Made by a program: the position numbers and the translations under genes. Below are positions 9,124 through 35,152 of a stretch of 35,802 bases of DNA, one piece after another. Positions within the stretch are counted from its first letter, which is position 1; each line of letters opens with the position of its first letter. This DNA is from Perkinsus chesapeaki ATCC PRA-425 (Eukaryota; Protista; Perkinsozoa). The notes below the pieces were generated by a model. That model made no database searches, had not been told where the DNA came from, and saw only the letters and a list, made by a program, of their open reading frames with translations. The stretch covers positions 1-35,802 of the forward strand of contig JAAPAO010000365.1 in NCBI GenBank assembly GCA_013115145.1. The letters run 5' to 3'.

Positions 9124-12100
9124 TCAATAAAGAGCATCATCGCTATCTGACAGGATGGACTCTCGATCGCACTCGAGAGAAGATTCGCTCGATTCGATTG
9201 AGGGGACCTTCGAAGAGTGTGTTGCCCCGCCCCACGGACAAGGATCTTGATCGGCATCCGCTGGTGAAAATCGGTAAATCTTTTGGCGAGACGACACCTT
9301 CTGCAACCGACTAGTAGGTGGCGGCGGTTGTGGGACCTATAAAATGAGGTCACCAGGGATTGAACCCGGGACCTTTCGATTGCTCACCTCAGCATGGACA
9401 TGAACGGGCGCCGTTGGAATGTAATGTTTATACCTGAGAATCTTCGCTCGCCAGAATCCTCCGAAAAATCGACCTACTCTGGATACCACATTTTCGACTT
9501 CACAAAGACTTCCGCATCCAGTGGCGTCGGAATTCTCGTCAGGCCCCTGCAGGAAAACAAACGACTGTGCCAATTTCGCGGCGCGTGACTTACTTCTTGG
9601 ACCCGTAGATAACACACTGAGCAGCAACCTTGCATGCCACCTCGCGCATTTTCGACATCGGCGGGAGAAGCGTGCGAGTCTTCATTTCTTCGACTGTGAC
9701 CATCGATGCGATCGTTCCTGATGAAGAACTCAATTCCACCAATACGTGAGCTCATCTTATCATACTCGCCGCTATATAGAACAGTTGGTTCGGTATGACC
9801 GCCAAGTTGCCTGCTGTTGCCGCTAGACCGATGCCGGGGAAGACATACCTACACAGTACGGCAGCCTTAGAACATCTGTTAATTGCCAACGCGCATCCAC
9901 TCTGGAAACGTTACGGAAATCGACTCCACGTTGGTCCCTAAAATATGTCGGCGACTACCACTGTAGGAGGGAGAGGGAGTTCAGTGAGAGTTACGTTAGC
10001 CCCGGCGGCTACGAAAGGTCCTTTGCATTCCAAGTCGGACTGATGAGCAGATGTAATGTAATTTCTATAACTTAACCACGCTTCGTCCCTAGAGAAATGT
10101 TCACAGGCTGAAATGACACTCTAGCTGAAATCACAATCGATCACGCGGTACGGCAATCAACCTCCTAAGAATCTTACATGTTACTGGCTTGAGCAGGTAT
10201 ATAGTGCTCATCTGTCTCCGGGAATGCATGAGAGCTGAGCTTATACGATTTCCCGCTCGGAACGTCTGAGGTCAAAAGATACTCTTCACTTTCTCAACCG
10301 GCCTTACGGTATGCTGGCATCGGACTTCCCGAGGCAAAGAGGCATTTGCCGTCGGTCGCGCGATAGGCCTCCTCTGCCGTGCACTCACAGCAGTTGGTCG
10401 GGTTTGACAGACTGAAGACAATCGGATACTCGCAATTCTCGTTCATAGCCTTCAGGAGCTCGGAGGAGAAGAGACCACTCTTGGCGGAGACGCTGAAAAG
10501 GAGCGCAACATGACCTATTCGGTATCTTCAAGCTTCAACCTAAGATACTCAGGTCAAATATTCTCACCCTATCAAAACAGTCGGTTTAACTTCTTTCACC
10601 ACAGAAAGGAGATCGTTCTTTCCACATTTCATAGGCGGCTGGACATAATGCACTCTGTACCTGAACGGACAAAAATGATTTTGTCTTAGCGGAGCGACGC
10701 GAGTTTTTCTCACTTTGCTCGTCCTTTGGCCATTTCGTACTCCTTCTGTCGATCAGTGCTGACAAGCCCCTTCGAATCAACCAGCCAAATTCGCGATTCT
10801 ACAGTGAATAAAACGTGACTCAAAAATCGTCACTCGCCACAAAAATCTTACTGGCTTCTTCCAAAGGGATTCCCTCTTGTGCCAAGGCCTCGCAAATGAG
10901 TCGGACGATACCAATTGCCGCACCACCAGAGCCAGCGAAGACCTAACGAAATCGATCGCTTGATCGATTAGCAGCATGGAGACTTACAAATCTTTGACCA
11001 TCAAGGGAGTATCTTTTCTTGCCGAGCTCGGCTTGACTGGTGGTCCTGTTAAGTCGGGTGGCACCTTTATCCTGCGCTTGCAGGTAAGCGCGCGTCTGAC
11101 AAGGTCAGAAGATTCTGACACCTCTAGCTGTGAATAACCCACCCTGAGGCCTGCCAATATAGCTCCCAAGACGACGCCTGCTGTTCCCTGAACATCATCA
11201 TTAAATGTGCCTAAGCAACCTTTTCATGCAGACGACCCAGGTTCGATCCCGGCACCCTACGTATTGAAGCCGAATAACTATCCAAGATCATAAAGGCATT
11301 CGGCTGGCTGAAATCTTCCCACTGAATCACAGCGTTCGGCCACCGCGTCAGCACCGCCGAAACAAACTCATCAATCATGGCAAAGTAGTCGGTGCTCTTC
11401 AGTCGCCTCTGGTGCTCGCCGATATAAAGCGGGTCGTTGAGCAAATCCTCGTTGTCTGTTCCGACATCGAGAATACAAGGCAAAACCCGCGCAGGGTTGA
11501 GGCCCGCACAAGCCACATACAAAGATACTTTACCAACCGAGACACCCATACCGTTAGCACCAAGATCGCCAAGACTAAGAATACGGCTGCCGTCGGTAAC
11601 AACCTAAGGTAAGCTCAAGTTGAGCTAAAGATACGCTTAGAAAGGGATCTTTTACCACTAGGTCGACCTCTTCATTCGGGCAGTTGTAGACGACCTCCTT
11701 GAAATGGCCTTTATCGCTGTATGTGAAGTAGAGGCCCCTCGAGATTCGCCAGACACTCCCATATTGTTTGCACCTAAGGCGTCGGATTTTTACGATTTTT
11801 CCATCAGAAATGCCAACGATATAACTCTGAAGTTTTACAGGATGCAACAGAAAGGAACGCTAATATGTTTGCATCAAGAACGTCGAAGGTCTCCTTCCGA
11901 AGGAGTCAAAAGAGAATCGACGACGACCCAGCGCGCCTATCGTACGGGTATGCTTTGATGGCGAAAAAATTCTTAGGAAAAACTAACTACACTATCCGAT
12001 GGAGAAATCTACAGGGATTCAGAATATATATGTCACACCGTTTGAGGCATTTTCCTACAAGGTAGTTAATCAGTGATATCACTTATCGATTTTAGCGTCA

Positions 12101-13337
12101 AAAATAATATAAGTTAAGTATTACTGTGATACAGCCTGCCAGAACGTAATATGATATTTCGAGGTTTCAAAATTGAAATCATATTTTGGCAGGCTGTAGT
12201 TGAAGTGATCGACAACGACTCATCGTTGTAAGGAAAACTCGAACAACAACAAGTCTGGAGTTACCCGATGTAGCAAGAGGGAAGTGCTACTGGATTCGCA
12301 TTGCGTCAGAAATAATGCCACAAATGGAAGCAAAACTCAAAGACGGTAAGATACAAATTAGGTCGGCTCAATGTCATTTACCATTGACGGCTACAGACCT
12401 AGACTTACACATCACCAACTGTTGGAATGAATACAATACGATGAAGCTCTTCAAGGTTATCCACCAACAACCGATAATACAGGGTCTCATTACGATCGAA
12501 GATGGCTGAAGAAAAAAACGATGAAAATGATACCTCTCCAACGCGCTCAAGGACCGCCAGATCATCAACAACATGAATCACTCAGTAATAACCAACGGGG
12601 TTGTCAGAATGTTAATTTGAGGAGTAACATTTCATCCAAGTTTCATTCCGCCCGACCTCTGCTCGGGTTTTAGTCCAAATTCGGGTTTTCATCGTCACCC
12701 AAACTTCCACGTTTTCGGGCTTTCACGCTCACTTACTCAAAAGTCTATCCGGGTTTGTCTCTTCCGATGAAACCCAAATCTCTCTCCTATCAAACCAGAC
12801 TCCTGTCGTCTCTTACCTTGCAGATCCATGAATCGCGATAAATCTGTATCCCTCATCCTCAACCGCTCCATGTTACGCGTCATTTGCATTTCGATATTGC
12901 ATTGCCTCACAGGAATCAGACCTCTCAAATTCAACTCATCTCGCTCAATCTCAGTGAACTGAGTGCCCTTGTTCAACACCTGCGTTAAGAAAATGCAAGT
13001 GATAGCAAGATGACCAAGATCCACTTCAGGAATTTACGTAAACAACTGAACCAGAAGTCCTCCTCGTTTCTACTCGAGGATTTCGATGCGAAATTAATTC
13101 CGAATTTATTAGTTCAATAAACTTTTCCGGCGAAAATTGCCAACCGTTTCAAAAACTTTTCTTATACACCAAGAGGCAACAAACGTTGAGGAAATGCAAG
13201 TGATAGCAAGATAAGCAAGATTCTCTTCTTACCGGGTTACGAAGAATATTCGCTCCTCTCGCAGATACGAGCATAATATCTTTCGCATCGTTATACTGCT
13301 CACTGGCAGCCTTAACTCCAACGATACTCAGTGGCAT
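9124..13337 (-). CDS. Malic enzyme (NAD(P)-dependent malate dehydrogenase, decarboxylating), multi-exon
   Basis: Spliced motifs in order: [133 protein letters not shown]. Confidence 0.95.
9337..9387 (-). other. 51-nt malic enzyme intron carrying a tRNA 3'-half-like sequence (sense)
   Basis: gtgagc AATCGAAAGGTC CCGGG TTCAATC CCTGG TGACCTC A TTTT atag. Confidence 0.75.
11211..11260 (+). other. 50-nt malic enzyme intron carrying a tRNA 3'-half-like sequence (antisense to host)
   Basis: Plus strand CCTTTTCATGCAGACGAC CCAGG TTCGAT CCCGG CACCC; includes a possible TTC anticodon loop. Confidence 0.7.
12980..13232 (-). repeat. Malic enzyme intron 1 bracketed by 38-nt direct repeats (family A)
   Basis: Copies at 12983-13020 and 13184-13221, 34/38 identical. 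Confidence 0.85.
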
Positions 13338-13627
13338 GCTGCTCAAGAATTGACCTGAGTCCGCTAGTGCGAATCTCGCTCGCCCGAATGATCGATTTGC
13401 ATTCACGATGAATTCCCGTATGGTTTTCCCAAAAGCCGGAAAAGACCGCAAAAATTCGGAAATATTTCCGGAAAAAATATGCGTTTGTTCAACTAAATTT
13501 TTTTAATATCGGAATACCATGCGTAAGCTCAAAGAAACACATGGAGGGTTCACAGTGGGCATGCATTCGGCCCTTCTACTTCTCCTAGGGGTACAATTCT
13601 AGTCAAACTGTCCGGGTCACCTCAGCA

Positions 13628-15459
13628 CTAGTAAAATATTTTATCTGAGGCTGAACGAGCCCCTGTTGAAACGTTCGACAAGCCAAAGCGTCTTCCTGAT
13701 GAAATCCCGTGAAGTGCGGGGACACTCCCCATCAAACGAAGGGAGCGTACAAAGCTGGACGGCGGTTCAGAACTGCAGAAATAATCTTATTTCAAAATCG
13801 TCTCACCTCCCATTTGCATAATCAACATCACTTGACGACTGCAATTTATGAACAAATCTTCTACACCATTGCCAGTTTTCGCTGACACCTATCACAAACG
13901 CCATTGATAAAAGCGCTCGCCCGGCTGATCGATTTGTCCAGCCAGCGCCTCACCTCGACATAAAGGAACCTATTGCTCTTAGCAGCTCTAGTGCCTTCTT
14001 CGGTACTAACTTGCCACATTTCGGGGTTCATGTCGCATTTGTTGGCGACAAGCACGATAGAGGTCGCGGACTTGAGCCAGCTGACGGAAGATTCGCCGGG
14101 CTTCGATACCCTCGAACGCTCTCGCTCGATGAACGCCAGAAGATTCTCGAAGGACTGACAAGGGGAGCAAAATCATGGGAAACTTTTTGCCCAAAATTTC
14201 GCAGTTTTTGACGTAAAATTTTTCGCAAAAAATTTTCAGAGGTAAAAATACGAAGTTATTTGGAGGAAAATGTGAACCATTTTTATAACAATAATTTGCG
14301 TTTTTCACGAGGACAAGTTGATCTCAAAATGGAGGAATATTTCATCAAAGGGAAAAATAAAAAGTAAAATATGCAACAAAAGGCAGACGGAGCGATGCAA
14401 CAAATTCACACTTACTGTCCTATCGGTCACATCATAGACCAGAAGCACCACCGCAGAGACATTTGCATAGGTGTAGGCAAACCGAGAATAATACGTATCA
14501 AATATGCATAATTGAAGACGTGATTGCTGAACCTGAAAAATATCTTTCTAATCGGTTTACGCACTATAAAGATTTCTCACATCCAAAAGAACCTTCCCAC
14601 TGTTGATTGCTGTCGTTGGGCAATAATCGCTTCGGAAAGAATCTTCAACAATTCTGTTAAATAAGCCAGTCTTGCCAACGCCGCTCGGTCCAAGTATGCA
14701 GTACCTACCAAAACCACTAAGTTATTTTTCTGACACCTCTAGCTACTGGACAGAGAAATCCCATTTCTGCAATTGTATGCCACCGAAGCCGTCATTCGGC
14801 GCTTCCCCGCCGCCGCCACCGGCCTCAGTCGTGACTTCTTTCGTCGACTTGATGCACTGCTCGGTTTCTTGACGCTCCTTGGCGAGAGCCTCCGCTCGAT
14901 CGGAGAGGATACAGTTGATTATTGTATTCCACTTCTGCAGGGTCTCTATGCTTGCACAGGATGCTAGATCTTGCATGGGCATGAGGTCGACATCGAAGTT
15001 ACCTAGAAAAGATACTCAATGCTTACTATTGAACGGATGAATCATTTCCATGTCACTTCCTCATTACATTTATCAGAGGTTGTGGAAGATACTATATTTC
15101 GTATTTGCTACTACTGTACTATGTTAAATGGAAATATATTTTCGACAATATGTGCGTAAGTATCACAACCTACTTCTGGAATGTAAACTCACAAGCACAA
15201 CCTACTTCTATTTCCTGCAATCTCTGCTCGCATCGTCTCTCCCTGCGAGGTGATAGAGCTCATTTCTCCCTCCGTGCCTGACAACCCAAAAGATGCTCTT
15301 CGCACTATAAAGGATATTCTTCACCGTGCGCACTCACCTTGAAATGCCACACTTTGTGAGCTGACTACCTGATACAAAAGATATTTTCCGATGTAGCTTT
15401 AGACCTACCCTAGGCGGCGGTGAATATCTGCCTTCGAAGCTCCACATGTGCCTTTGCAT
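13628..15459 (-). CDS. Atypical Ras-superfamily (Rab-like) small GTPase with N-terminal extension and degenerate G3
   Basis: Spliced G1 GPSGVGKT, G2 YCPTT, LLVYDVTDRTSF, G4 VLVANKCD, G5 EVSAKTGNGV. G3 reads IFDTYYSR. No C-terminal Cys motif. The 5' exons are less certain. Confidence 0.85.
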
Positions 15460-15915: not shown

Positions 15916-18297
15916 TCACTTCCCTATTGGTTTCCTGACGTTCGAGGTTTGTATATAATTCAACCGATGTGCCCTGTGGGCCTGCTTCTTAGCGAACTTC
16001 TGCCATGAGTTCTGCGCTTGCCTAAAATATGACAATATCGATCTGCCGTTTCAAAAAATAGTGTCAATCCCATGACGACGGAATTTGCCGTTGGCTCTTC
16101 CACCATACGAAGCTCCGAAAGTTCCAAGAAACACGTAAAGGTCTCAGGCATGGAGTGCTGATAATATGTATTAAAATAAAAGCAACTTGAAGATGCGGGC
16201 CGATTCACTATTTCTCGTTTGATGCATTCTCCAGACAAATTGTTTATAAAGACTGACCAATCCAAAATAAAGAATCGCTAAAAAGCACGCTACAAGTTAA
16301 GATATGCTACTAAAACTAATGGAAGTAAGATACGCGTTGCGCACTCGAAAGATCTTGGATATCCTACTTAGATTCCTTATTCTTCAGCTCTTCTCGTTGC
16401 TGAGTCTTCAATTGATGGATTTTTCGCTTTTTAGCATCTGCCCAGAACCGACATCAAAAAATATCTTTGCGCACCCGGAAGAATTTCCGTAAGATTCTTC
16501 GGGACATCGCATAGCACAATAAACCTAGCAGCGTATCTTTCTCACCTATCGACGCCTCCGAGTCGACCTTCGGATCAATCTTGTATTTCTCCGGAATCCT
16601 GTAGCCACCCGGCGTAACATATCTGCCCGAAAAATGCCCCATGCCGGAATCGAACTCGCGCCATTGAAACTCACTCCTTTTCAGCTACCGCAGTTGCCTT
16701 TTTAGTTTCAACAGCCTTCGGTATCAGCCTACAAAGGAAAGAAAAATACCCTCGCCGGGCGTCGAACCCACGACCTTCCTCACCGAATCTGGTCGATACT
16801 AACCTCCTCCGGTGTCTGTCCTGGATCTTCCTCAAATAGAACCTTATACCCCTTCACTGTATGCTCCAATACTGTACACTGGTACCTACGCAGCCATTGC
16901 ATTTAGCGCGCGCCCAGTTGATCGATTTTCCCCCACCATAATCCATCCTGGGACCAAATTGCCTGCACTGTCGAGCCCACCGGAGCCTCTTGCGGCCTCG
17001 GCGGTTTCAATAGAGCCACATCTTGGACTTTGTATTCTCTGCGTTGGTCGAAACCAATGAAACGAACGGCGCATCTGTCGGGATAATCTCTCTCGTGAAC
17101 CACGGAAGGTTCTTACCGCTCTGTGCCGATCTCATCCACCCGTACGCCAGTGATCTCGGCATTGAACCTAAAGCAAGGCGATTCTGGGAGACTCTTCCGT
17201 ACTCGCTCGCCCAATACGAGAATAATAATTTTACTTCCTCGGAAATTACCCCGCGGACGACGGTCGAGCCAAATATGATATTCCTTGCCACTTTAGAAAA
17301 ATGTTGTATATCTAAATATTTAGATTCGATTCACCTGGGGGAATATTAATTTGTCCTGGGCTTTTATTAATTAGATCTTGAGAAGGCGTAGGCTAATAAT
17401 CTATTAAGCCTCTCATTTTCCTATTTTTCCATCAGAAAGCTCGCCTACCCTCCCCTTACCATTTATTCTCATAAAACACCTCGCACGTCCTCCCAACCAA
17501 ATGGCTTCGTGCAGACGTCTGAGCCGATCCCGATGCTGCCGTCGGTGGTGCCGCCGCGGCCTTCTTTTCCGCCTCGAGCGCGGCAGCTGCTGCCAGACGC
17601 TCCTTCTCGATTTCCGCGCCCATCGCGAGCACAGCTGAGGTGAACGATAAATCATAGAGAACAACAGCCCTCGAAATACTCATGAAATACAAAGGAAAAA
17701 TTACCGAAATTTTCGGGCATAAATTGATGTGAATTTATCAGATAAAAATAAGCTTCACAAAAAATGACGTATCTGATACAACAGATGAAGGATTATAAAA
17801 CACGCGATTAAGCTCATAGGGGGAATCCCAGTTGAGATTTCTGCATTGAAGGCATTTTTTCGCCGCAGTTTTGGGAGTAGGTGATCAAATTAGACAAAAA
17901 ATTCCAGGCAAAATATACTGTATTAGTTCCCTTAGAATAAATGAAGAATTGTGATTAATATATTATAATATTCACTCTAAGATCGTTCTATTCGATATAT
18001 TATAAATATATTTAATTCTATTGTGATTCCCTTCGGTAATATTTCTTGCTCACTTTCTTTCTGCTTTTCACTCTCCTCCAAGATGTGGACAGTATCCTTC
18101 AGCTGCTCATAAATCTAATAACCGAGAATAGAACTCACGACCTCTCGCTTCACAAACAACAGCATTAACCAACTCACCTCTTTGATCTCTTCATTTTCCG
18201 GATCCTGATCCAACAGCGCCTTCACCTGTGATAACTGCTCCTGATAATACGCCAGATCTCCCGACTCCCCGCCCGTGGCCGCCGCCGTAGAAGACAT
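15916..18297 (-). CDS. SMNDC1: Splicing factor SPF30/SMNDC1-like protein with two Tudor domains
   Basis: N-terminal coil YQEQLSQVKALLDQDPENEEIKE; Tudor 1 CEVFYENKWFNAEI..VRFIGF; Tudor 2 VQAIWSQDGLWYQCTV..YKVLF; C-terminal YRIPEKYKIDP..KKRKIHQLK..QNSWQKF, typical of SPF30. Confidence 0.88.
16623..16674 (-). other. 52-nt SPF30 intron carrying a tRNA 3'-end-like sequence (sense)
   Basis: gtgagtttcaatggc GCGAG TTCGATT CCGGC ATGGGGC A TTTTT cgggcag; the T-stem is degenerate. Confidence 0.65.
16729..16783 (-). other. 55-nt SPF30 intron carrying a tRNA 3'-half-like sequence (sense)
   Basis: gtgagg AAGGTC GTGGG TTCGACG CCCGG CGAGGGT A TTTTT ctttcctttgtag. Confidence 0.75.
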
Positions 18298-18657
18298 CGG
18301 TTTAGAATCTCAACTGCAAACTTGGACACCACTTCTTACTCTTTCCGGTCAGGGTAGCAGTCGACCGACTAGCACCAGGGCTGGCACCCAACCCACCAGC
18401 TAGCAGCGAGCTACTGCTAGCTGACCATCGATAAGTAGCCCTACACCAACCTTTCCGATATGCCACCGATTCATCCGTAAACTACATAGAAAGTTTACCC
18501 TGGTGTCACCCGCAACCTGGGGATCCAGAGGTGCTCCTCCGAGATCGTCAATACTCCAAATGGAATTCGGCTGCGGGCTGAATTTCACTCGACGGGAGAT
18601 ATTAAAACACTATAAAACTCAACAGCTTAGCTTCACACCAACCCACGGGCATGACAA

Positions 18658-18693
18658 ATCTTGCTCATCTTGCTCTTACTTGCATTTCCTCAA
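18658..18693 (+). repeat. Solo family A copy overlapping the stop codon of the Btk-motif gene
   Basis: ATCTTGCTCATCTTGCTCTTACTTGCATTTCCTCAA, 33/36 identical to the reverse complement of 13186-13221. Confidence 0.85.
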
Positions 18694-21600: not shown

Positions 21601-22520
21601 GATGCGGAATGAGTGAATTAGAGATTATCCTCAACTCTACTGCTGCAGCACTAGATATCTCGCGGAATCGTGACAGGCTCGATACCGGAGCTCCCAATTT
21701 GATCGTCGTATCCAGAAGTATATCTTATACTGGTTACGTGAGCGAGAGCGTCAACTCACCTTCTCATCCGATAACAACTTCTCATCCAGCAATCGCCGGG
21801 CCATGGCCTCAAGCCTCCCCATCGACGCATACGGAAACTAGTCAGTAATTTCGTGGCGCGCGAACCCCACTTCATCTACCTCCACGCGGAGCTCTTTGAT
21901 GAATTCATCCCGTATATCCGCGTACTGTCTCTTCTTTTCACGCACTAGCTCCTGGAATTCGGCCACATGCTCTTCTGGCCTGTAAAAGACCCGTTGAGAA
22001 AATGCAAGGCGGGTCAAGATTGCAAGTTCCCCCGAACCCATACTATCATAGACAGAATCTGCGACCTAATCCACGTGAAATTCAACAACAGCCTGTCGCT
22101 TCACTCAGCGTTGAGGAAATACAAGTGGGACCAAGATATCCAAGATTCTCCCTGTTCTTACTTCCTATACGTCTTGTGGTTCACACGTGCGTTGACGTCT
22201 CCATTCATTTTTATTCTTCTTTTCTCATCTTTTACAAACGCCTCCACTCTAGCTTTAATGTCATCTGCTTGGCACGTGCTCGATGAGATATTCCACGACC
22301 CGACAAAGTCATTATCAGAATTAGCACTGTGGCCGCTCGCACCTAATAGGCCCAAAATATGTTCATACCGACTTTTCCTCCAGCGGCTGCAGTCTAGGAA
22401 CCCCCCCTCATACATGACACTTCATACGCTTTCATTTCCAACTTCCCTCACCAAACTGTCAGCTGGAGCTTTTGCACCAAAGCGTCCCAGTGGGAAGTTC
22501 AGGATTTTTAAATTTCTTCG
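18690..22520 (-). CDS. Uncharacterised protein with a C-terminal Cys/His motif resembling a Btk-type zinc finger; 5' end unresolved
   Basis: Exons join in frame: ..FVGSWNISS..RVNHKTYRK|PEEH..LRVE|FPYASMGRLEAMARRLLDEKLLSDEK|NRRYPIAHESFRPNLSLTTQDR|RYREHYHPGKFDLIEFENKEGWSCCMNFDKDSRGCE|YRVINPDAWCLLGY*. Includes a 2712-nt intron at 19048-21759. Confidence 0.75.
19157..19310. mobile_element. MITE-like foldback element in an intron
   Basis: 27-nt terminal inverted repeats (19157-19183 and 19284-19310, 26/27 match). Inside are tandem palindromic units GATATGGTAATCATTACCA(C/T)ATC. No clear target-site duplication seen. Confidence 0.55.
20300..21360 (-). mobile_element. Degenerate non-LTR retrotransposon ORF2 remnant (post-RT region), intronic
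   Basis: Stop-interrupted fragments in LINE order: HYLGRVL (cf. KYLG after RT), ASKAFYPL..GL..IKFFFSGVLP (thumb-like), SFGARCPESAQCPCG..H (cf. C-terminal zinc knuckle). No YADD motif found. Confidence 0.35.
21980..22161 (-). repeat. Intron bracketed by two family A copies
   Basis: The copy at 22109-22146 is 32/38 identical to 13184-13221; a shorter, more diverged copy lies at 21992-22020. Confidence 0.8.
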
Positions 22521-25001: not shown

Positions 25002-26436
25002 ATGGCTTTCCATCTTCAACAACTAAAAAACGCAACTCGGCAAGTCTTGTGTGGGCTAGCGCATAATTTCGTGGCGCGCGACAGCGCATCCAGCTTGATC
25101 GTATCACTGTCAGCCGGTAGAAGTGACGATCCCTCATTATTTATGGGGAAAACTAGTACTGATAACAGGAAGGTAAGGTATGATAGATGCACAGGCTGGC
25201 ATGAACGCCAAGATGTTCATTAACTGAAATCTGGGCTTCGGAACAGTTCAGCATCCTGCATGTTGAAAGTAGGTTTGCTGTCGATTCCAAAACTTCTTGA
25301 TCGACCTCGATGAAATGAAATAAACTATTGGATCAACATTGCGGCAATAAGAAGGCCGGTATAAGGGAACTATTAAGTTGATAATAACTATTAGGGGTGA
25401 AATAAATTCAGAAAACCAAAGAGCAAAGCTTGCTGTTTCATCGAAATAATATTATTATTTTTCCCTATAATTGATATTATTTAGTTTTCCTTATAATTAA
25501 CATTATTATTCTTCCCTATAATTAATATTATTTAGTTTTCCTTATAATTGACATTATTAGCTTTCCTTATAGTTATTATTATTAGTTTCTCCTATAATGT
25601 TTTCCCTATTACCATCAACCGATCACATAGATCCCCGTAGTGTAATATTATCACCTTCGGACGTCATTAAATCTGGATATGTATTAAAACAAAGCAAGCA
25701 TCTAAGACAGTGGAAGCGCCGATGGTTGGTGCTAACCAATGACATGCTATGTAGCTTCACAGCAAAAGGTAATACGGCCGGGTTCCAAAAACGAAACATT
25801 TCAAAACTACGTTTGAGTTCGAGAAGTGGTCTCTCGGAAGTTTGATAAAAATGCAAGTCAGTGAATATTTTTTTATTTTTAGAAAAAACATTAAAACCTT
25901 TCGGGAATCCTACGGCATATCAGTTTTCAAACCTGCACTTTCTCGCCACTCGCTCGTGTGCTTTTGGGCGGTCTGCAAGCTCCTTCATATTCTATGTTAT
26001 TTTTTGTATCATTAATAGGATATTTCGAGGCTTGAGCTCATTGTTAGTAGATGGTTTTTACTATCAGGGGCGATGGCGTATCCGACTGAGGCGCTGTTGT
26101 TGCGATTGTGTTCATCGGTGAAATCGGCAGACGAGGAAACGGGACAGGCTAATTCTTTCAAGTAAGAAGTATCTTGTATCGGTATGAAATGCACGCTTCA
26201 AGCTCAGAGTTGACTCTTCAAGTAGAGTTTTCTATCTAATAGCGGAAACGCCTTCCGAAAAGGAATCGTGGATCGGTCAAATTGGTCGGCAAATGATTCG
26301 TCCTGAAGTAATATTAAATCGTGAGAATGACGATGTCGAATCTCCGGCGGAGCGGAACACCTCTACCGCTTATGTGGTGGGTAGCTCATTTGGATCTCGG
26401 AAAGATATGTCACAATTCCCTAATGGCTTTGATTGA
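25002..26436 (+). CDS. Small pleckstrin homology (PH) domain protein
   Basis: Spliced PH domain: VIKSGYVLKQSKHLRQWKRRWLVLT..LCSF|..PTEALLLRLCSSVKSADEETGQANSFK|VDSSSRVFYLIAETPSEKESWIGQIGRQM, with the conserved C-terminal helix Trp. The first exons are tentative. Confidence 0.85.
25440..25610. repeat. AT-rich degenerate minisatellite (about 21-23-nt unit) in a PH-gene intron
   Basis: Repeated TTCC(C/T)TATAATT(G/A)A(T/C)ATTATT units. Confidence 0.8.
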
Positions 26437-26501
26437 CGAAAACAAAAAGGATTGCGTTTTGGAAGGGTTCACAAGAGTTAGTTTTTTCGGTATTTTCAAT
26501 A

Positions 26502-28567
26502 ATGCCGGCTACTACGTGTGCGAAGGCGTTGCAGTTGTGGCAGGAGAAGCATGAGGTAATGTATCAAACCTCTCGCGTATCTTGCACGGGTCAACCTGGG
26601 ATAGGTGTGGTCTCTTTGGTTGCTTTCAGTAGACTCGTCCATATCGTTTGCACTTATTACATTTCCGCTTCGCGCACGTTTCCATCAGACTGAGGGAATG
26701 GTACATCTCTCGGAAGCGACTGAAATTTCTGTTTTTCCCGCAATGAACCTGTGGTTAGTGACTCGGCAGTAATAGTGGTACATAGTTATCAATCCGCATT
26801 TACGTACGAGGTGGGGCTAATGCGATGGCTCAGTAGGATTCTCGGAAGAATATAATCTCGGGTATCACCTGTAGTAGGATCTATCACCGATAATAGGCTC
26901 TATCACCGATAATAGGATATACGTGTCCAGCGTGAAGAAACGGCCATTGCATTTTCACAGGTGATTGCTCTAGGGCTCCTAGAACGTACTTGTTTCAGGG
27001 GGCCAATCCAGAGGAGGCGGAAATAATCAAATTGATGTGTCTGATACCACCAATAGAGAAGCTGGACTCAGTGCTGAATAGTCTGGTTAATGTAGAAGTC
27101 TGGGGCGAGGATCGAACCGGGGACCTCTTGATGGTTAGGTTAAACATTTATCTCTCTCGACTAATTGCATTGACAAGATGATACCGCTGCCTGGATTGAA
27201 GAATCTGCAGATTTTGTCGCTGGGAAGGAACCAGATTAAAAAGATCATGTGTCTTGAGGAAGTAATGCCGGATGCGTCTAGCGCCGCGGTGGGGTTGTTT
27301 AACGACTCACCAAGGTCAGTAGAAATGTGACTCACCAAGGTCAGTATAAATGTGACTCACCAAGGTCAGTATAAATGGGACTCACCAAGGTCTGTAGAAA
27401 TGGGACTCGCCAAGGTCTGTAGAAATGGGACTCACCAAGGTCAGTAGAAATGTGATCTCGACGGAAAAGCTAGTAGCTTTCGTAGTTCTATTGATTCTCG
27501 TAGTTTGTGTCTCTGGGCTGTGGTAGCTTTTGCAAAAAATAGAGCTCGATCGAAAAGGAGACTAAACACTGAAGCTGTGGTTGAATCCTCCTCGCTGTTT
27601 CTGAATGGTCTTATCTATACGTTATAAAAGCTCTCGTTTGTTAATTCCGTAAGTTACCAAGAATCTTCGACGCAGAGGAGTTACAGCGTCCGCATTTGAT
27701 CAGGTCGGTGCATCACTGCAGCAGTTATGGATATCCTATAATCAAATATCCTCACTGGTAGTATCTTTGCGCACTATAACGATTTTCCTCTGGAGTTCAG
27801 GACGGTCTCGGCCCCTGTGTAAAACTGCACACACTTTACATTTCCAATAACAAGATCGCTTCGTGGGACGAAGTCTCGTGAGGATTTTTTGCGATAGATT
27901 TTTTCGATTGAATTTCTCCTTCAGGAAGCTTTCGTCATTGCCGCAACTGACTAATGTGTGTTTGGTGGGAAACCCGATTTATGAGGTCGGAAAAATGCGG
28001 GATGCGGGGATCGAACCCGGGTCATTCGATACCATCAGGGCTTCACTCGCAAAAGCGTTCGTCCAATTGTCATGAAGCATTTTCCAGGCGTAAAGACTCT
28101 CGATGGGGAAATGGTCACTGGTAGGAGGCAGGAGATTTGATATCGATCACTAGGGCGTGCGCTACTTGTAAATGTGTAGGTGTGGACAACACGGATGAGC
28201 TGATAGAAACGTTGCGGACGAAATTGGTCGAGAAATACGGAAGCCTGGACAAGGCGTTTGAAGGGTATGGCGATGATCTCGCTGTTAGTGAGGAGGAATT
28301 CGGGAAGATTATGGCTGAGTTCGGCATTGAAGGGGTCAGCGCTGCGGTAAGAGAAGGGACACAGGTTCGATTCTTGGCGCAGACATTCTTTGTCGTGGCC
28401 TGTGAGAGGCCACTGTCACACGTTCGGTCTGTTGTTGAGTGGTTTTTGCTGACCTCGCTTTATCCAGCCTTATATGGCTTTATATTCCTCAGGATGCCTT
28501 TCGACATGTTGATGTCGACGGAACTGGACAAGTTACCATTGGTGCATTCAAGTCTGCTATTGGCTGA
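26502..28567 (+). CDS. DNAL1: Axonemal dynein light chain 1 (LC1, leucine-rich repeat) with a C-terminal EF-hand extension
   Basis: [18 protein letters not shown]|[31 protein letters not shown]|[71 protein letters not shown], followed in frame by an exon ending [24 protein letters not shown]. Confidence 0.92.
27092..27138 (-). other. 47-nt DNAL1 intron carrying a tRNA 3'-half-like sequence (antisense to host)
   Basis: Minus strand ctaaccatcAAGAGGTC CCCGG TTCGATC CTCGC CCCAGAC ttctac. Confidence 0.65.
27304..27453. repeat. Tandem repeat, 6 x 25 nt, in DNAL1 intron 3
   Basis: Unit GACTCACCAAGGTC(A/T)GTA(G/T)AAATG(T/G), head to tail with no spacers. Confidence 0.95.
27986..28038 (-). other. 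53-nt DNAL1 intron carrying a tRNA 3'-half-like sequence (antisense to host)
   Basis: Minus strand gtatcGAATGAC CCGGG TTCGATC CCCGC ATCCCGC A TTTTT ccgac. Confidence 0.75.
28347..28392 (+). other. 5' part of the last DNAL1 intron (28347-28492) carrying a tRNA 3'-end-like sequence (sense)
   Basis: gtaagagaagggac ACAGG TTCGATT CTTGG CGCAGAC A TTCTTT. Confidence 0.65.
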
Positions 28568-28651
28568 TACAGTAATATCATGTATATGATGATACTCATG
28601 TTAGTCTTGCCATTTTGTGTTACTAGTATTTTGAAAAGTGGCCAAAAGACA

Positions 28652-28790
28652 GTGTCAAAGCGGGCGTTAGTGGTTTGTGTCAAAGCGGGCGTTAGTGGTT
28701 TGTGTCAAAGCGGGCGTTAGTGGTTTGTGTCAAAGCGGGCGTTAGGGGTTTGTGTCAAAGCGGGCGTTAGGGGTTTGTGTCAAAGCGGGC
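28652..28790. repeat. Tandem repeat, about 5.5 x 25 nt, downstream of DNAL1
   Basis: Unit GTGTCAAAGCGGGCGTTAG(T/G)GGTTT, head to tail. Confidence 0.95.
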
Positions 28791-29304
28791 GCGCGTCAAT
28801 GCCACATAGGTGACCAAATAGTGCCTCCACGTCGTAGGGCCCATGAGTACGAACTTGTGCGTTTAATAGCATTTGAGTCGCATATCAGTACTCGGTTAGA
28901 AGTATGTTGAATATTGCTTGTTTAATAAAGCTCGAAGTTTAACGTCAGGAAGGAAATTTGTTTTGTGTCTCTCCTTCCGCCAGAAGGAAGATTTATCCAA
29001 CCGGACTTTCTATTATATCCCTGTTCCGGGAGCACTCCTTGGTTTTCAAGGCAAAGATTCCCGCGACTTTTGACGAGATTCAGGCTTGACAAAGCGGATG
29101 GTACTCGTCGTACTGTACTGCTCGTTGATTAGGGGTAATGCGATCCGGATTCGTTGAACAAATTTTGTTTCACGGAAGTTCAAGTTTTTTCATGCTATCC
29201 AATTTGGTCGAATCCCCGAATTTCTCAGAAGCGGTGCTCTCAGGCGCTTTTATGAGCGTAAGCTTTTCCTAAAGCTGTTGAATGATAATATTATCGATTT
29301 TGCT

Positions 29305-32136
29305 TTAGGTATGTTCAATTGTGGCCGCGGGAACTTCGGTGTTTTTAGTTAACTTGATGAAAGGCGGGCAAACTGCACCGAGGGTGCTGGAAAGTAGGTG
29401 CCAGTGAGTTCGCCTCCATCTCCACCGATGGCCGTTGTTGATTTCGGCATCTTTTAAAATTGTCTTTATTAAGTGTAGGAGGCTGGAGTTCTTCACTCTT
29501 CGCACCAATGGCAGTCTATGGTAATTTGTTGGTAATTTACCATCAATTAAATGTTTCAAGACCCGTACTCGATCTGAGCGTGTTTCGCTTTGATACGCTC
29601 TGACAGAGCGGCTCTGCTTCTGATACTGATCCTGGAATTGCGGGGCTTTTTATTGAGAACTCTCCTAGAGAAACTTCCCTTAGCAAGGAATCATTACACA
29701 GGAAGTTACAAACCTTGACGGCAACTGGATGAAGTATCGGCTCCCGTGGCAATAACGTTGCTCTACTCGGTAGTGGGAATCGGTTTGAACTGACTTGGAA
29801 CTTACATGGATTGAGGATCAATGATGAGCCCCACTCAGGGTCACGGTAACCTGGAAGTTCCAGGCTGGAACGGGTTAGCCGGTTACCATTGGTGGCCTAC
29901 TTCCCCGGTGGCGGCTTTGGGGTCCCTAATTTCTCTTCAATGTCAAATATTGTTGGATGTCCGCGTCGAAGTATATCGGCGGCACCTCGCAGACTCCGGT
30001 CTAACGTTGACACTTTGCCTAGGCCCTAGGGTTTGTATACGCGACCGTTTGCATTACGGTATTGTCTGGTATTACCAGACTGGTAGCCAGCCAAGACTAC
30101 GGCATGAACTTCGTGCCGTAAAGGCTGGTTAGAAGTCCTAACTTGGGACTCGGACTGACTCACTCAGGGAGTCTCCATGGGCAGCTCTCACTGGGGGGCA
30201 CACAGTCAGAGCTCTTCTGGTAAGTCCAATCTGAACGAGAAATTCTTGCCAAGAATTAGACTGAGTATACCACGTACCCTGCCAAGTTGGTCGTGCCTCA
30301 CGGTGGATGACCTATCTGCCATCAGGGTCCTCGCATAAATCTCAGCGCTAGGAAGGAGGTACTGTTCCAGCGTAGCTGGGGAGAAGTTCAGGAGATCTGG
30401 CAGTTCTGAACTGGTGTCTTGATCGATGTTAGCGATGTCACGGCCAGTCATTACCTTGGAGATGCCTTTCAGGATGTAAGTGAATAGCAAGTCGGTGGAC
30501 AGTCCACCGTGGACTTCATTCTGCCTCGTATGCCGAGAAATTAGGAGAACCCAACCCTCCTTCCTAAGCCACCACCGCATTGATCGGATCAATTCGGTGG
30601 CGGCGAATCAATTTGATCCGTTCAATGCATGGGTTTGCGGCATAAAAGCAGCAACTTGCTGCCAGCAAGGTACATGCCGAGAATTAGAATAGACTGCGCG
30701 CGCGTCTACATTGATATTAGCAAGTGTTTCGGAAGTCTAAGAACGTAATTAGTTGAGCCAAGATGACTACAATTTAGATCTCCAAGAGTTTCGGTTATCG
30801 AGCAAGATTAGTTGAGCCAAGATGACTACAATTTAGATCTCCAAGGGTTTCGGTTATCGAGCAAGATTAGTTGAGCCAATATGACTACAATTTAGATCTC
30901 CATAATATGGATTACATTTCAATTTGAGATTCTCAAAGGGTCACTCGTGCATATCTTCTCTGTTAGCTGCTGTATCGGATAGCCGGATAATTTGAATCCA
31001 GGCAGACAAATCGTTTCCTGTTAGTGTATACGGAGACTGACGCCAGGCCTTCGTAAGTCATGAATGAGACTCCGTTTTCCTGTCAGGCAATCCCATTGGA
31101 TATGGCATTGATAATCTGGGTCTTAAACTGTGCGAGTTTCGTAATATGAAATTCGCATTAACTGTTGATTGAGATTGGAAAGGGTTTCCAGGAAACCCCA
31201 TCCGGCCTTGTCAACCATTGGCTTTGGAGCTCCTTGATCATACTCATAAGACCTCCTATATGACGAGACTATGACTCCTCGCGTATGACGAGACTAGTCT
31301 GACGCAATAGCCTGCTGCTAGTGCCAGAAATTTGGTACCATCACTCCATACTTCTCCAAAAGGCCCGGAATCACAGGGGCTTTTCTTAGAGCAATAAATT
31401 TACTCGTAGATGACAGTGCCAAAGGAATGCATTCTTCCATTTAGTAGCTCTTTCAGTTTCTCTTACCGTTTTTCCTCAATCTTGGATTCTGATAAGGGCT
31501 TTCGCATAGTTGGCACGGTCTGCTGGTTTCCAAGAGCCTGCTGGGGTGAGGACGGTAGCTATATCGCCCTGCTCATCATTCTCCTTTGCCTCGATTCGAC
31601 GCGCTTGAACAATGCCTCAACAACGTCGCTGGGGGCAGGCGAATTACGCCGAAGGAACGCCGAAGGACTCCCTCGTTTGTCGGAGGGCATCGGTCCGATG
31701 CCATCGGACAATCGCTTTTCCCGGCTCTGCTCGGCGTTGTCGTTCGTGGAGGTTAGGAGCTGTGCTAGCAGGCTGCTAATGTGTTGCTCCGTGGGTCGGA
31801 TGTCACCTTTGTTGTCGCGGGGTGGGGCGGGGAGCCGGAGCGGCTCCTTGGTCTTGTTGGACGTTCTTTCCAGGCGCGGATCTTCGCCGCTTGCAGGGCC
31901 GCTGTTTTATGGGGTATATTGAGCACCAGTTCCTCGAGCTTAGTGATGGAGTCCATTTTTAGTAGCATGAAGCCGTCTACGTCGGCGAATAAGGTTCTCA
32001 CGGAGACGCTGCCCACAAAGGGAAAGTGCTCCTGGGCCGCGAGGGCTTCGGATGTGGAGGACTTGCGGGTAACCGGCCTCGCTTAGGCAGTCGAGGCCGG
32101 AGGAGGGGTGCTGGTAATGGAGTCCGAATTGGCCAT
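29305..32136 (-). pseudogene. Chain of decayed ORF fragments (pseudogene or old retroelement-like remnant)
   Basis: Consecutive minus-strand protein-like segments broken by stops and frameshifts: MANSDSITS..*..VRTLFADVDGFMLLKMDSITKLEELV; EQHISSLLAQLL..VVEALFKRVE; MSMIKELQSQW..; FTYILKGISKVMTG..EQYLLPSAEIYARTL. No diagnostic RT, integrase or recombinase motif recognised. Confidence 0.4.
30748..30901. repeat. Tandem repeat, about 2.6 x 59 nt
   Basis: Unit ATTAGTTGAGCCAAGATGACTACAATTTAGATCTCCAAG(A/G)GTTTCGGTTATCGAGCAAG. Confidence 0.95.
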
Positions 32137-32698: not shown

Positions 32699-35152
32699 AT
32701 GCGAGCATTTTCCGATAGTACTTCCGACTCGGGAGTAGTCTCGGGAGTTCCGAGACTCCGATCGGCCCACTATACTAGTGGTCCACTAGTGGTGGCGCGG
32801 GTTAATGTCACCCGTGGTATCAATCGGTCGGCAATCCCGAAAACGTGTGAAATTCACACTATGAATTTCTTCCCCGGTGCTTTGTTTCCCCAAGTGGTTT
32901 TCGAACTACTGGAGAGGTTCATGCTCAGCGATAATACGAGACGTTTACTCTCGACCTGCATAATCATTCTCCTCTCTCAGATTTTTTCCTCTCGTTCGCA
33001 TGTGCCGTGATGAGTTGTGACAGTCTCGGTCACCTTCTACCCGAGGTTGCACACGCTGGTGGCGCGAGTAAGCTGTGGACCTATCTGAATGGCTTTCTTA
33101 CCCAGCTACGAATCTTGGAATCTATTATAGCCGAGAAGTTTAAAATACTTTCCTCATCTGATCGGGCGGCAAAAATGGATCGAAACTCATTTAGTATCTT
33201 CACCGGTTAAATAGAATTTGGATTGGAAATGAGAATAATATCCTTACAACTTTTAAGTTACAAGGAGGACATAGTATTTCGCTGAGACAATTTCATGTTC
33301 GTTCTCTTTCACTCCCACCTCCTCGCAGCGATGGCTTGAGAGTCTCAAGTTGAGACCTGTGCGCAGTATCAATGGGCACGAGAATGACGCATTGCCGGCA
33401 GTAGCTACGCGGTTTAGAAATTTCCCTGAAATGGTCGGTCGATCGGTGTAGGCGAATTTCCACAGGATTTACAGTGCATTTTTAGGTTATCTGTTTTTCT
33501 TCCTCGGCGTGGCACTGACGCTTGGGATCAACACTGGAGTGGACGCGCTCCATCGGCGCTACCATCAAAAGCACCCTGGTCACCACGATGGTGAAATTAA
33601 GAACTTTGGAGTGGCGAACTTATTGGTTGGTTGCTCTTGTCGATCAGTTGATCGATTTCGGCTTTCAGATCGAGCTTCTTCATAATTTCGTCGACGGGCT
33701 GTCTCTGGGAATGGCCTATCTTGGTCCTAGTAAGTCCGTTTGGTTCTTTTACCTGATTTTCATAAAAGCATCCGTGAGAAATTTTTACCATTATTTTCGC
33801 GCTCAGATATAGCCAGTGCGCGTGCTGTGACCGTGGCGGTAGCCGCGCACGAAATACCGCAGGAACTTTCTGACGGCGTCGTTCTGCTTGCGGCGGGTTT
33901 GCATCCAGCAAGGCTTCTATGGTTAGTTTGCGAATTCTTAACCACACTCGACCATTCTCACGTAGGTTGAATTTTCTGGTGTCGTTGACGTGCCCTCTGG
34001 GTGTTGTCGTCGCATTCATGCTTCAAGCGGCTCTGGCTCGCAAGGCTTACGCGGTGAGTGCAGCGATCATAGGGATAAACGCCCGCAGAGAAAAGCTATG
34101 GACTTGAGTAGTCCAAAAGCGGCTTCGCAAAATCCATCGAGAATCGCAGCCAGGGGCGTATTATTAAGGGAGTCATTTACTCTCAACTTCAGACTCTCGA
34201 GTAAAAGCTCATTGTCCGAATGTATCCCAAACAGCACTTTGCCTTCAGCGGATGTTGCATGACGTTCGAGGCTCGGATTTTGGGCGGCTTTGAACCAGAT
34301 ACTTCCAAGCGGCTGTCATTAATATGCTTCCCTGCTCAAGCCAACGACTGATTATTCTCAGGCCACGGCAGCACTGGCAGCAGGCAGTTTCACCACGTTC
34401 GCTATTTTCATCATGGGCGAGCAAGTTGTTAACACAACCATACAGATTATGACTGATAATACCGCCAATAACAGAGGCTTCATACAGATCTTAACCTCGC
34501 TAGGCCCCGTACTTGTTGCGGCCTGGCTTGGAGTGGCTCTGGTAAGTGCTGGCAGCACTGTGCTGCGGTTGTGGATAATACTGAAGTAGCATACAATGCG
34601 CGTTTGTTGGTAAACCTCAATAGAAGTGAAATTCACTTAGTGAATATCTCAAAATAATTAGAATAATCTGAAGCTTCGAGTACTACACACCTCTATGGAC
34701 AACCACACCTGTTATCTCATATTGTTATTTTATTAAACCAATCGATTCCCTCGGTTCCAATTCACTCAACTTGCTCAACATATGCGAACGCACAATGGAT
34801 ATTCTCATCGTACCATATTGTGTACACAATATAAGAAATCTATGGCTGGGCTTGGAGCACCCAGGCTGGGTGACCCAGCCGAGTGGGAACGATCTCGCCA
34901 TAGAGGTCTCCTGTATACTCCAGGCTGGAGTATACAGGAGACCTGGAGTCTCCAGCAATTTATTGGCGCAAGTCTGGTCCTGTTAGGTTCATTCGGTTCA
35001 TGAAGCTGCCGAGGGTCAGCTCATGACCGACGGTGATCAGTTCAGTGTTATATCTACAGTTGAGGCATTCTTCCGACCGACGGTGAGGGCGTGCGCTGAT
35101 GCGAAAACCTGAATATTTTTTTTCTCAGGCGTATGTCCACGACGAGATGTGA
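32699..35152 (+). CDS. ZIP-family (SLC39, LIV-1-like) divalent metal transporter; both ends approximate
   Basis: Spliced motifs: FLSFACAVMSCDSLGHLLPE, His-rich loop HRRYHQKHPGHHD, TM4 ELLHNFVDGLSLG, TM5 VAAHEIPQELSD, LNFLVSLTCPLG, ALAAGSF. Confidence 0.85.
34904..34944. repeat. Perfect 20-bp inverted repeat with a 1-nt centre, in a probable ZIP intron
   Basis: AGGTCTCCTGTATACTCCAG-G-CTGGAGTATACAGGAGACCT. Confidence 0.95.

Follow-up and report, generated by a model that had tools for sequence, protein, structure and literature searches.

Are the short sequence modules that recur in the tiny introns of one Perkinsus chesapeaki locus the debris of intron gain, or are they elements that selection has kept? 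Perkinsus is a shellfish parasite and a basal relative of dinoflagellates and apicomplexans. The DNA analysed, hereafter the window, is a stretch of 35,802 nucleotides (positions 1-35,802, forward strand) of contig JAAPAO010000365.1 from P. chesapeaki ATCC PRA-425 (assembly GCA_013115145.1). An earlier note on it had proposed that six or more orientation-independent modules, distributed over six or more genes, reflect a genome-wide process of intron gain or turnover through the capture of small RNA or DNA fragments.

Introns in the window were called with a self-trained Viterbi gene finder combined with splice scores, which replaced an ORF-bridging detection that proved too noisy; genes between 18 and 26 kb are still missed or merged by this finder. 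From 9337 to 33668, it predicted ~27 short introns (40-77 nt), ~14 of which carry a strong module (tRNA T-arm-like in six, X in four, Z in two and B in two), and a AAGARTATCTTT-like element is present in five further short introns (Table 1). A single element occupies a third to a half of a ~47-nt intron. Family A occurs at both ends of two long introns, 12980-13232 and 21980-22161; an ortholog search with the exon beside the latter, a candidate intron, returned no homologue. Together with the genome-wide counts given below, these figures confirm that recurring modules in short introns are real, and the four introns of the kelch/cytochrome-b561 gene (2262-2305, 2444-2492, 2644-2684 and 2815-2862) are indeed devoid of them, the motif scan being empty in 0/4. 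Modules do occur across several genes, but solid models exist for only four: malic enzyme, a Ras-family GTPase, SPF30 and the gene at 26.5-28.6 kb. The A copy at 18657 and the B copies at 18750, 21847, 23778 and 25065 could be placed in no convincing intron (splice-score sums of at most 0.6, no gene model).

Table 1 Module-bearing features of the window and the module-free kelch gene
Position	Strand	Feature	Support
2138-4035	+	kelch/cytochrome-b561 gene	Pfam Kelch and Cytochrom_B561
9337-9387	-	malic enzyme intron, 51 nt, sense tRNA 3'-part (T-arm CCGGG/TTCAATC/CCTGG)	gene finder, splice score 5.7, T-stem 5/5 pairs
9547-9593	-	47-nt intron, B at 9572-9588 immediately past donor	splice score 6.9
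10266-10307	-	intron with AAGAATATC-related element
10799-10851	-	53-nt intron, B-like motif 10830-10846, reverse orientation	gene finder
10943-10987	-	45-nt intron, ATCGATC palindrome (family Y)	inverted pair I19
11096-11142	-	47-nt intron, Z at 11113-11129, rRNA-sense in transcript	18-mer identical to rDNA
11211-11260	-	50-nt intron, antisense tRNA T-arm/B-box piece 11234-11257	gene finder
11604-11655	-	intron with AAGAATATC-related element
12980-13232	-	253-nt malic enzyme intron, A at 13184-13228 (donor) and 12983-13027 (acceptor)
13355-13406	-	candidate 52-nt intron, X	weak splice score, -0.4
13889-13953	-	65-nt Ras-family GTPase intron, X at 13911-13934	Pfam Ras on adjoining exon
14533-14580	-	intron with AAGAATATC-related element
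14705-14746	-	42-nt intron, 5' end is Z (14727-14743)	gene finder, rDNA match
15278-15337	-	60-nt intron, AAGAATATC element	gene finder
15369-15408	-	intron with AAGAATATC-related element
16623-16674	-	52-nt SPF30 intron, sense tRNA-like B-box piece	gene finder
16729-16783	-	55-nt SPF30 intron, sense tRNA T-arm piece	T-arm stem check
16886-16936	-	51-nt SPF30 intron, X
18657-18769	.	A (18657-18693) and B (18750-18766) upstream of SPF30 start codon	best intron candidates -4.8 and 0.6; no demonstrable intron
21838-22161	-	B (21847-21863) and 182-nt candidate intron 21980-22161, A at 22109-22153 and 21992-22036	weak gene model
23778-23794	-	B in weak 59-nt intron candidate 23752-23810	score 0.5
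25065-25081	-	B, probable intergenic DNA between divergent genes	no acceptable intron candidate
27092-27138	+	47-nt intron, antisense tRNA-like B-box piece	gene finder
27986-28038	+	53-nt intron, antisense tRNA T-arm piece	inverted pair I7, T-arm stem check
28121-28179	+	59-nt intron, X	gene finder
28347-28492	+	146-nt intron, sense T-arm-like piece at 5' end	gene finder, T-arm stem check
33626-33668	+	second family Y copy	inverted pair I19

The elements are 13-30 nt long and form the families tRNA T-arm/3'-part, Z (AGCTAGAGGTGTCAGAA), B (TCACGCGCCACGAAATT), X (AATCGATCA-N3-GGGCGAGCGC), AAGARTATCTTT and A. Genome-wide searches, in which the reversed pattern of each motif served as the control, yielded 990 copies of B (control 2), 373 of X (1), 486 of Z (9), 34 of A (3), 151 of AAGARTATCTTT (11) and 2211 of the B-box (346). 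All six are over-represented relative to this composition-matched control, the main families 6- to 500-fold. Families C, D, F and G of the earlier note could not be matched to the families defined here. The flanks differ among copies and similarity is confined to the 13-30-nt cores, indicating discrete motifs rather than transposon copies. No occurrence of the B and Z 13-mers was found in the literature searched. New in this analysis are motifs B and X and the AAGARTATCTTT element, the finding that they co-cluster, and the estimates of how many copies lie in introns. The two-copy families Y, U and V could be due to chance.

Another question is whether these motifs are specific to introns. Short introns hold just ~30-45% of the copies of B, X and Z, with a 2-3.5-fold enrichment over other non-coding DNA, as estimated with a home-made gene finder and by donor proximity (54% donor coverage, 8% chance per side), the context of copies beyond 200 kb being deduced from pattern counts; therefore, the modules are not intron-specific. 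In an unselected 200 kb, ~2% of ~440 predicted short introns contain a module, which identifies the window as an atypical hot spot, and the 487 predicted introns of this sample share 10-14-mers at the shuffled level only. Particular genes have several families side by side in their introns: different families co-occur within one gene in the window and at another locus (L023), and several match the same contigs (e.g., C167, C454 and C1240). Nearby copies of one family are in direct, not inverted, orientation. Independence of orientation holds for the tRNA-like pieces and X, which are equally frequent in both directions, but not for B and Z, which are biased ~2.8:1 and ~4:1, respectively, in short introns. 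This bias of B and Z would also fit a role at the RNA level, as opposed to factor binding to DNA.

Which of the modules can be traced to known RNAs? Z reproduces exactly a conserved segment of LSU rRNA, which we take to adjoin the peptidyl-transferase centre. Of 80 eukaryotic rDNA contigs, 61 contain the Z 17-mer unchanged, the match at L085 falls within the Rfam LSU hit there, and the 18-mer of intron 11096-11142 matches 80 of 80 rDNA loci. More than 100 copies are letter-perfect, many show decayed rRNA similarity past the 17-mer (AAAGT.ACC), and a 34-nt LSU-like stretch is present at G000:C135. Only this one segment of ~5.5 kb of rRNA is represented among the modules, a misfit with the random capture of abundant RNA. 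B-box or T-arm pieces occur in 6-8 window introns; they comprise 3' parts only (20-35 nt within 40-55-nt introns, no A box) and keep 4-5 of the 5 stem pairs and the TTCRANN loop. At least two module classes, Z and the tRNA 3' parts, thus correspond to fragments of cellular RNAs, as the earlier note had supposed for the tRNA halves.

For the remaining families, several candidate origins were rejected. B, X, A and AAGARTATCTTT are absent from the 80 rDNA contigs; among the matches listed, those of B and X fall elsewhere than the 5S and SRP loci detected, and a further search with a 5S pattern gave zero matches. The similarity of family A to a spliced leader is not significant. A hairpin role was discarded, since no excess folding was seen in module introns relative to the remaining ones. 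Rfam searches of the whole window and of a 61-nt Z intron, included for positive control, gave nothing useful, and no Rfam family matched the modules, the method being too insensitive for fragments.

If intron gain had generated these introns, are their positions restricted to one lineage? The cross-species sample is small, consisting of one 10-kb locus of a second Perkinsus species (L025) and one 1-kb locus of P. olseni (L084). At least 15 intron positions (13 detected automatically, 2 by hand) are common to the window and L025, and module-bearing introns are as positionally conserved as those without modules; no lineage-specific intron was seen among the positions compared at this one locus. 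Fourfold sites are saturated (15/46 identical). Intron gain, as advanced in the earlier note, is not supported by these shared positions; that introns with and without modules are equally conserved is the first of the two outcomes which the note had named as refuting it. In the pooled comparison, identity reaches 73% in modules and 59% in the remaining intron interior, against a baseline of 52% for unrelated intron pairs (Fisher p=0.0017).

L025 carries B, X, A, a AAGAATATCTTT element and tRNA-like pieces. Identity to the window is 74-95% in its X, B and tRNA-like modules, with the remainder of each intron scrambled. The tRNA-like pieces of introns 9337-9387 (position kept) and 11211-11260 (L025 4959-5031) retain 20 of 27 and 20 of 21 nucleotides, respectively; B of 9547-9593 (L025 6574-6634) retains 14 of 16, and X of 13889-13953 (L025 2139-2193) 19 of 24. 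X of the candidate intron 13355-13406 aligns ambiguously with L025. Blocks TTTTGTGGCG.AGTGACG of intron 10799-10851 and GCGCAC..GAAGAATATC of intron 15278-15337 are likewise common to both loci. In P. olseni, the SPF30 introns 16886-16936 and 16729-16783 keep X (at 740-761) and the AGGTCG..GGTTCGA core of the tRNA-like piece, respectively. Thus, X, B and tRNA-like modules, conserved in place, appear to be selected rather than recent captures. The families are unequally constrained: conservation beyond the neutral level is seen for X, B and the tRNA-like pieces, but not for Z (two sites) or Y (one site). Z, perfect in the window, is degenerate in both orthologous introns, being weakly similar in that of 11096-11142 and degenerate at the shared position of 14705-14746; Y (10943-10987) is not conserved, which marks it as a weak family. 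Family A varies between the loci in the number of its copies and in their position, and the counterpart of the malic enzyme intron 12980-13232 is one 46-nt diverged A-type intron.

Old introns conserved in position, together with purifying selection on the elements, lead us to read the modules as putative recognition sites for cellular factors. They would form a genome-wide vocabulary of 13-30-nt elements, spread over non-coding DNA generally and residing also in ancient introns; the factors would be conserved ones, most simply DNA-binding proteins, with TFIIIC on the B-box as the sole known candidate. The orientation bias may have been shaped by compatibility with splice signals, as antisense Z resembles a branch point followed by a pyrimidine tract and AG. 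From sequence comparison, we infer that conservation reflects function, and that this function consists in the binding of factors, probably to DNA; we put at about even the chance that the modules are factor-binding elements under selection, situated in old introns as well as elsewhere in non-coding DNA.

Among the alternatives, the modules may be relics of ancient capture, in which small pieces of abundant RNAs and of other DNA, reverse-transcribed or acting as filler, entered breaks in the common Perkinsus ancestor and created or refilled tiny introns. What survives of the capture proposal is the presence of tRNA 3' parts and an exact LSU segment in introns in both orientations, the decayed rRNA similarity of many Z copies and some turnover of modules, namely, of Z and of A between species. 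Nevertheless, we regard this scenario as unlikely: none of the compared introns is lineage-specific, X, B and tRNA-like cores have outlasted the saturation of synonymous sites and so are not neutral relics, a single rRNA segment is used, B, X, A and AAGARTATCTTT have no match in rDNA, the B and X matches listed lie apart from the 5S and SRP loci found, and the majority of copies lie outside short introns.

Mimicry at the RNA level, whereby pre-mRNA elements imitate tRNA, rRNA or other RNA targets, so that RNA-modifying or processing enzymes, snoRNPs or Argonaute/Piwi small RNAs tune splicing or transcript fate, seems rather improbable. Over half of the copies are outside short introns, possibly in untranscribed DNA, the tRNA-like pieces and X are indifferent to orientation, and neither the folding of module introns nor the (fragment-insensitive) Rfam search lends it support; consistent with it are the mainly rRNA-sense Z copies in introns (89 vs 46), the bias of B (112 vs 62), the preserved T-arm stems and loops, motif lengths of 17-24 nt, which fall in the small-RNA range, and the existence of Piwi-domain genes in the genome.

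Introners and introner-like elements are known from Micromonas, Aureococcus and fungi. They have also been reported in Amoebophrya (PMC7789003), an alveolate related to Perkinsus, and the likeness to our case is that unrelated genes have many spliceosomal introns containing a repeated sequence. In introners, however, the whole intron is shared, terminal inverted and direct repeats are frequent, and insertions are lineage-specific; here, introns at unrelated sites share the cores only, in line with the earlier note's distinction from classical introners, no inverted terminal-repeat pairs were seen among nearby copies of one family, and the positions compared are ancient. Mobile elements (introner- or MITE/SINE-like) that generate introns and provide the splice sites with their own ends are therefore very improbable, also in view of the shuffled-level k-mer sharing. 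Approximately 14 of 44 antisense X matches directly adjoin a consensus donor, always in one register (GCGCTACTTAC), and some B copies lie immediately 3' of GTAAG, as expected of such elements, but tight packing in a 47-nt intron explains this abutment; two introns with A at each end and a solo 52-nt A intron at L023 also point in their direction. Chance, compositional bias or assembly artefact, conceivable for Y, U, V and the weak intron candidates, is refuted for A, B, X, Z, the B-box and AAGARTATCTTT by the control counts, by chance-level matching of the B 17-mer in 596 Gb of prokaryotic genomes and by recurrence at orthologous sites of independent assemblies.

The putative recognition sites can be compared with several other systems. 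ETC (extra-TFIIIC) sites are B-box-only TFIIIC sites of yeast and human, mostly intergenic. Like them, the tRNA-like modules are isolated B-box consensus sequences (GGTTCGANNCC), dispersed, orientation-independent and conserved, without a complete tRNA gene (ARAGORN found zero tRNA genes in the window); unlike them, many modules sit in ~47-nt introns beside unrelated motif families, and occupancy by TFIIIC would be a prediction. A Pfam B-block_TFIIIC search of the exon-split genome found no domain. tRNA-derived SINEs also disperse tRNA-related sequence through non-coding DNA in both orientations, but they possess A and B boxes, a body and a tail, whereas the modules are short 3' parts, ancient and conserved in place. 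Mauro and Edelman reportedly described, in 1997, rRNA-like sequences in primary transcripts, short pre-mRNA stretches identical to conserved rRNA; Z differs in being a single LSU segment with ~490 largely intronic or non-coding copies. Dispersed families of short motifs that mark chromosome domains or gene sets, exemplified by the C. elegans pairing-centre motifs, are similar in having 12-20-nt motifs in hundreds of copies, regionally clustered in introns and intergenic DNA; those are bound by dedicated proteins, and here several families co-cluster at the gene scale.

To our knowledge, almost no cis-regulatory code has been described in Perkinsus. The present analysis yields five or six motif families with hundreds to ~1000 copies each, conserved past neutral saturation and concentrated in the tiny introns of certain genes, i.e., a ready and testable list of candidate functional non-coding elements. 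It also corrects the idea of intron gain, as the introns are old and their recurring parts appear to be selected words that occur outside introns as well. The presence of rRNA-identical and tRNA-like words beside orphan motifs suggests seeking one common explanation rather than a tRNA-only one. Tentatively, such an explanation might be a Perkinsus 'address code' of selected short elements (tRNA T-arm and LSU copies, B, X and AAGARTATCTTT) in the bodies of a subset of genes, mainly in micro-introns, read by Pol III-type or architectural DNA-binding factors or, on pre-mRNA, by RNA-modification or small-RNA machinery. If true, this address code would represent an undescribed class of intragenic cis-elements.

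The window corresponds to one entire contig (G000:C2799) of a eukaryotic assembly totalling 41.7 Mb. Its genes are interrupted by very short introns, which we called with a small self-trained Viterbi gene finder. The training sequence consisted of 200 kb of unselected genome (contigs C1090, 1-130 kb, and C663, 1-70 kb) and the window. On convergence, it predicted 487 short introns, most commonly 46-47 nt long, whose consensus is AG/GTAAG ... TTTTCAG/G. The malic enzyme, GTPase, SPF30 and kelch genes were all recovered; the program fuses adjacent genes and fails at ~18-26 kb of the window. Homology searches, run exon by exon, revealed a 90%-identical fragment of the malic enzyme exon on a Logan contig and, for the SPF30 exon, a protein labelled Perkinsus olseni with 92% identity, which places the DNA in Perkinsus. 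No tRNA gene was found in the window.

Features of the window with their coordinates
Feature	Coordinates	Source
Kelch/cytochrome-b561 gene	2138-4035	Pfam
Long intron with a family A copy at both ends	12980-13232	
Ras-family exon	13861-14055	Pfam
Long intron with a family A copy at both ends	21980-22161 (candidate intron)	

The gene finder placed ~27 short introns in 9337-33668. Pieces of a tRNA T-arm/B-box, whose stem keeps 4-5 of its 5 pairs around a TTCRANN loop, were present in six of them, motif X (AATCGATCA-N3-GGGCGAGCGC) in four, and motifs Z (AGCTAGAGGTGTCAGAA) and B (TCACGCGCCACGAAATT) in two each, while a AAGARTATCTTT-like element was detected in five further short introns of this region. 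The recurrence of modules across introns described in the earlier note was therefore borne out, as was its remark that the kelch-b561 introns carry none (0/4). Five more B or A copies (18657, 18750, 21847, 23778 and 25065) have no demonstrable intron. The second half of X (GGGCGTGCGCT, GGCGAGCGAAG) also occurs alone in introns 35083-35128 and 9434-9477, once immediately 3' of the donor, and X may consist of two half-sites that can stand apart.

Genome-wide, copies were counted against the same pattern reversed as a control. This gave 990 copies versus 2 for B, 373 versus 1 for X, 486 versus 9 for Z, 34 versus 3 for the A core, 151 versus 11 for AAGARTATCTTT (some as 25-nt tandem arrays) and 2211 versus 346 for the B-box GGTTCGANNCC. 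The flanks of the copies differ; therefore, these are discrete motifs of 13-30 nt, not pieces of a longer repeat. The B 17-mer showed no excess over chance in 596 Gb of prokaryotic genomes, and the B and Z 13-mers were not found in the literature searched.

Other repeats were also observed. Three non-coding tandem arrays of unrelated units (27279-27478, 28627-28816 and 25444-25596) have a period of 25-26 nt and 5-6 listed copies each, and the AAGAGTATCTTT element likewise forms 25-nt arrays at G000:C2084:7966-8077 in the P. chesapeaki assembly; periods of 25 nt seem to come up repeatedly in this genome. At 30748-30924, a 59-nt unit is repeated three times, and its minus strand matches the Perkinsus spliced leader at 17/18 positions (sequence from PMC3101222). 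This array fits the non-functional SL-like tandem repeats described in the same paper. Two perfect palindromes with a 1-nt centre and arms of 23 and 20 nt (20145-20191 and 34904-34944) are accompanied by a nested inverted-repeat hairpin (19157-19310), for which matches to Rfam miRNA models were sub-threshold only. On C1090, an 809-aa ORF without introns (L003:4913-7342, i.e., G000:C1090:24913-27342) has bacterial and viral DegT/DnrJ/EryC1 aminotransferases as its nearest atlas clusters and is possibly a horizontally acquired sugar-modification gene.

The location of the copies was assessed by the presence of a GTRRG donor 0-25 nt upstream of an exact core in either orientation. For B (427 exact cores), a donor lay upstream of 62 cores read one way and of 112 read the other way, with a gap of ≤12 nt in 87 of the first 100 of these 112; for Z (402 cores), the counts were 89 rRNA-sense and 46 antisense, and for X (210 cores), 42 and 44. 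Calibration on our own sample gave a chance rate of 8% per side and showed that GTRRG represents 54% of predicted donors. After correction for both values, the share of copies inside short introns is estimated at ~40-45% for B and X and ~30% for Z. Short introns make up ~10% of the DNA according to the home-made gene finder, on which compartment sizes and intron shares depend. Copies are thus enriched 2-3.5-fold in short introns versus other non-coding DNA, with the majority still elsewhere. The orientation independence suggested earlier holds for X and for the tRNA-like pieces (5 sense, 6 antisense) but not for B (~2.8:1 in introns) or Z (~4:1, rRNA-sense favoured).

Several families occur together on the same contigs (C167, C454, C498 and C1240), and a second locus, L023, carries B, B-like, solo-A and tRNA-like introns consecutively. 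The window harbors 11 B, X and Z copies versus 1.6 expected, and the unselected 200 kb contain three. In the latter, any module was found in ~2% of 440 introns, and k-mer sharing among introns was no higher than in shuffled sequence. Therefore, the claim that a large share of introns bears modules applies to module-rich genes, but not to the genome.

The cross-species evidence on the age of the introns comes from two loci, one of 10 kb and one of 1 kb. The first, L025, is a 10.2-kb contig of a second Perkinsus-like species syntenic with window 15460-7282. Across the long malic exon, identity is 87%, 94% and 48% at codon positions 1, 2 and 3, and 15/46 four-fold sites agree; neutral sites are therefore saturated between the two species. 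Donor and acceptor fall at identical alignment columns in 13 introns, and two additional introns (9337-9387 and the family A intron) were matched by hand. Intron gain, as proposed in the earlier note, is thus not supported at this locus, since all compared positions, with or without a module, are common to both species at this divergence.

The modules themselves are conserved: identity between the window and L025 introns is 19/24 for the X core, 14/16 for the B core, and 20/21 and 20/27 for tRNA-like pieces, and a B-like block in intron 10799 is common to both. Pooled module identity reaches 73% versus 59% for the remaining intron interior (p=0.0017) and 52% for unrelated intron pairs. At the P. 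olseni SPF30 locus (L084), the X intron and one tRNA-like intron are conserved likewise. Z is degenerate in 2/2 orthologous L025 introns, and the weak palindromic family Y showed no conservation in L025. Family A shows turnover: two A copies, 87% identical, lie in the 253-nt window intron, its counterpart in L025 is a single diverged A-type intron of 46 nt, and an expanded GTPase intron of L025 carries an additional A-like copy. As for intron length, L025:1132-1407 (~275 nt), which contains a GGGCGAGCG piece besides an A-like copy, is orthologous to the 48-nt window intron 14533-14580 and so is a micro-intron expanded in one lineage; in the reverse case, an L025 intron of 47 nt corresponds to window 15003-15205 (203 nt).

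Sequences of rRNA and other RNAs served as leads only, with tool checks where stated. The starting lead was the Z consensus, which resembles a conserved segment of LSU rRNA. Extending the Z pattern with adjoining rRNA sequence identified a 34-nt LSU-like stretch at G000:C135:5826-5859. The adjoining downstream conserved LSU sequence was not found in the assembly at ≤3 mismatches, so this stretch is a fragment and the nuclear rDNA seems largely unassembled; the sole Rfam LSU match in the assembly is a 630-nt piece (G000:C3219:4365-4994). The exact 34-mer is present in at least 119 metagenome contigs. Of these, 80 rDNA contigs were fetched, and 61 contain the exact Z 17-mer; the 80 include one contig from a human-gut metagenome, possibly human rDNA (L144), used in bulk k-mer tallies only. 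In the rDNA contig L085, the Z match falls within the Rfam LSU_rRNA_eukarya hit. Many Z copies show decayed rRNA similarity immediately past the core, and within the 236 kb examined this is the sole segment of the rDNA unit that recurs. B, X, A and AAGARTATCTTT are absent from the 80 rDNA contigs and were rejected as rRNA pieces, and their listed copies fall elsewhere than the 5S and SRP loci identified; family A as a spliced-leader relic was rejected because the similarity was not significant. Ancient capture is a possible origin of the tRNA- and rRNA-derived words, but it leaves unexplained both their conservation and why just one rRNA segment is used.

The modules are most likely selected recognition sites, not the products of recent fragment capture or mobile introners, because the elements are old, their cores are sharp and conserved amid scrambled surroundings, and the copies lie in old introns and other non-coding DNA, co-clustered in certain genes. 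Recognition could also, less probably, take place at the RNA level, through mimicry of tRNA or rRNA that enzymes of RNA modification or processing, or small-RNA machinery, would perceive. Exons with a Piwi domain (G000:C3210:7974-8153 and G000:C255:875-1197) indicate that the genome encodes Argonaute/Piwi-type proteins. Action at the DNA level is favoured because neither X nor the tRNA-like pieces prefer an orientation, most copies are outside short introns, and module introns show no folding advantage over the rest; compatibility with splice signals could account for the biased orientation of Z and B. The modules would thus serve as putative factor-binding sites in the DNA of P. chesapeaki; the sole known candidate factor is TFIIIC, at the B-box.
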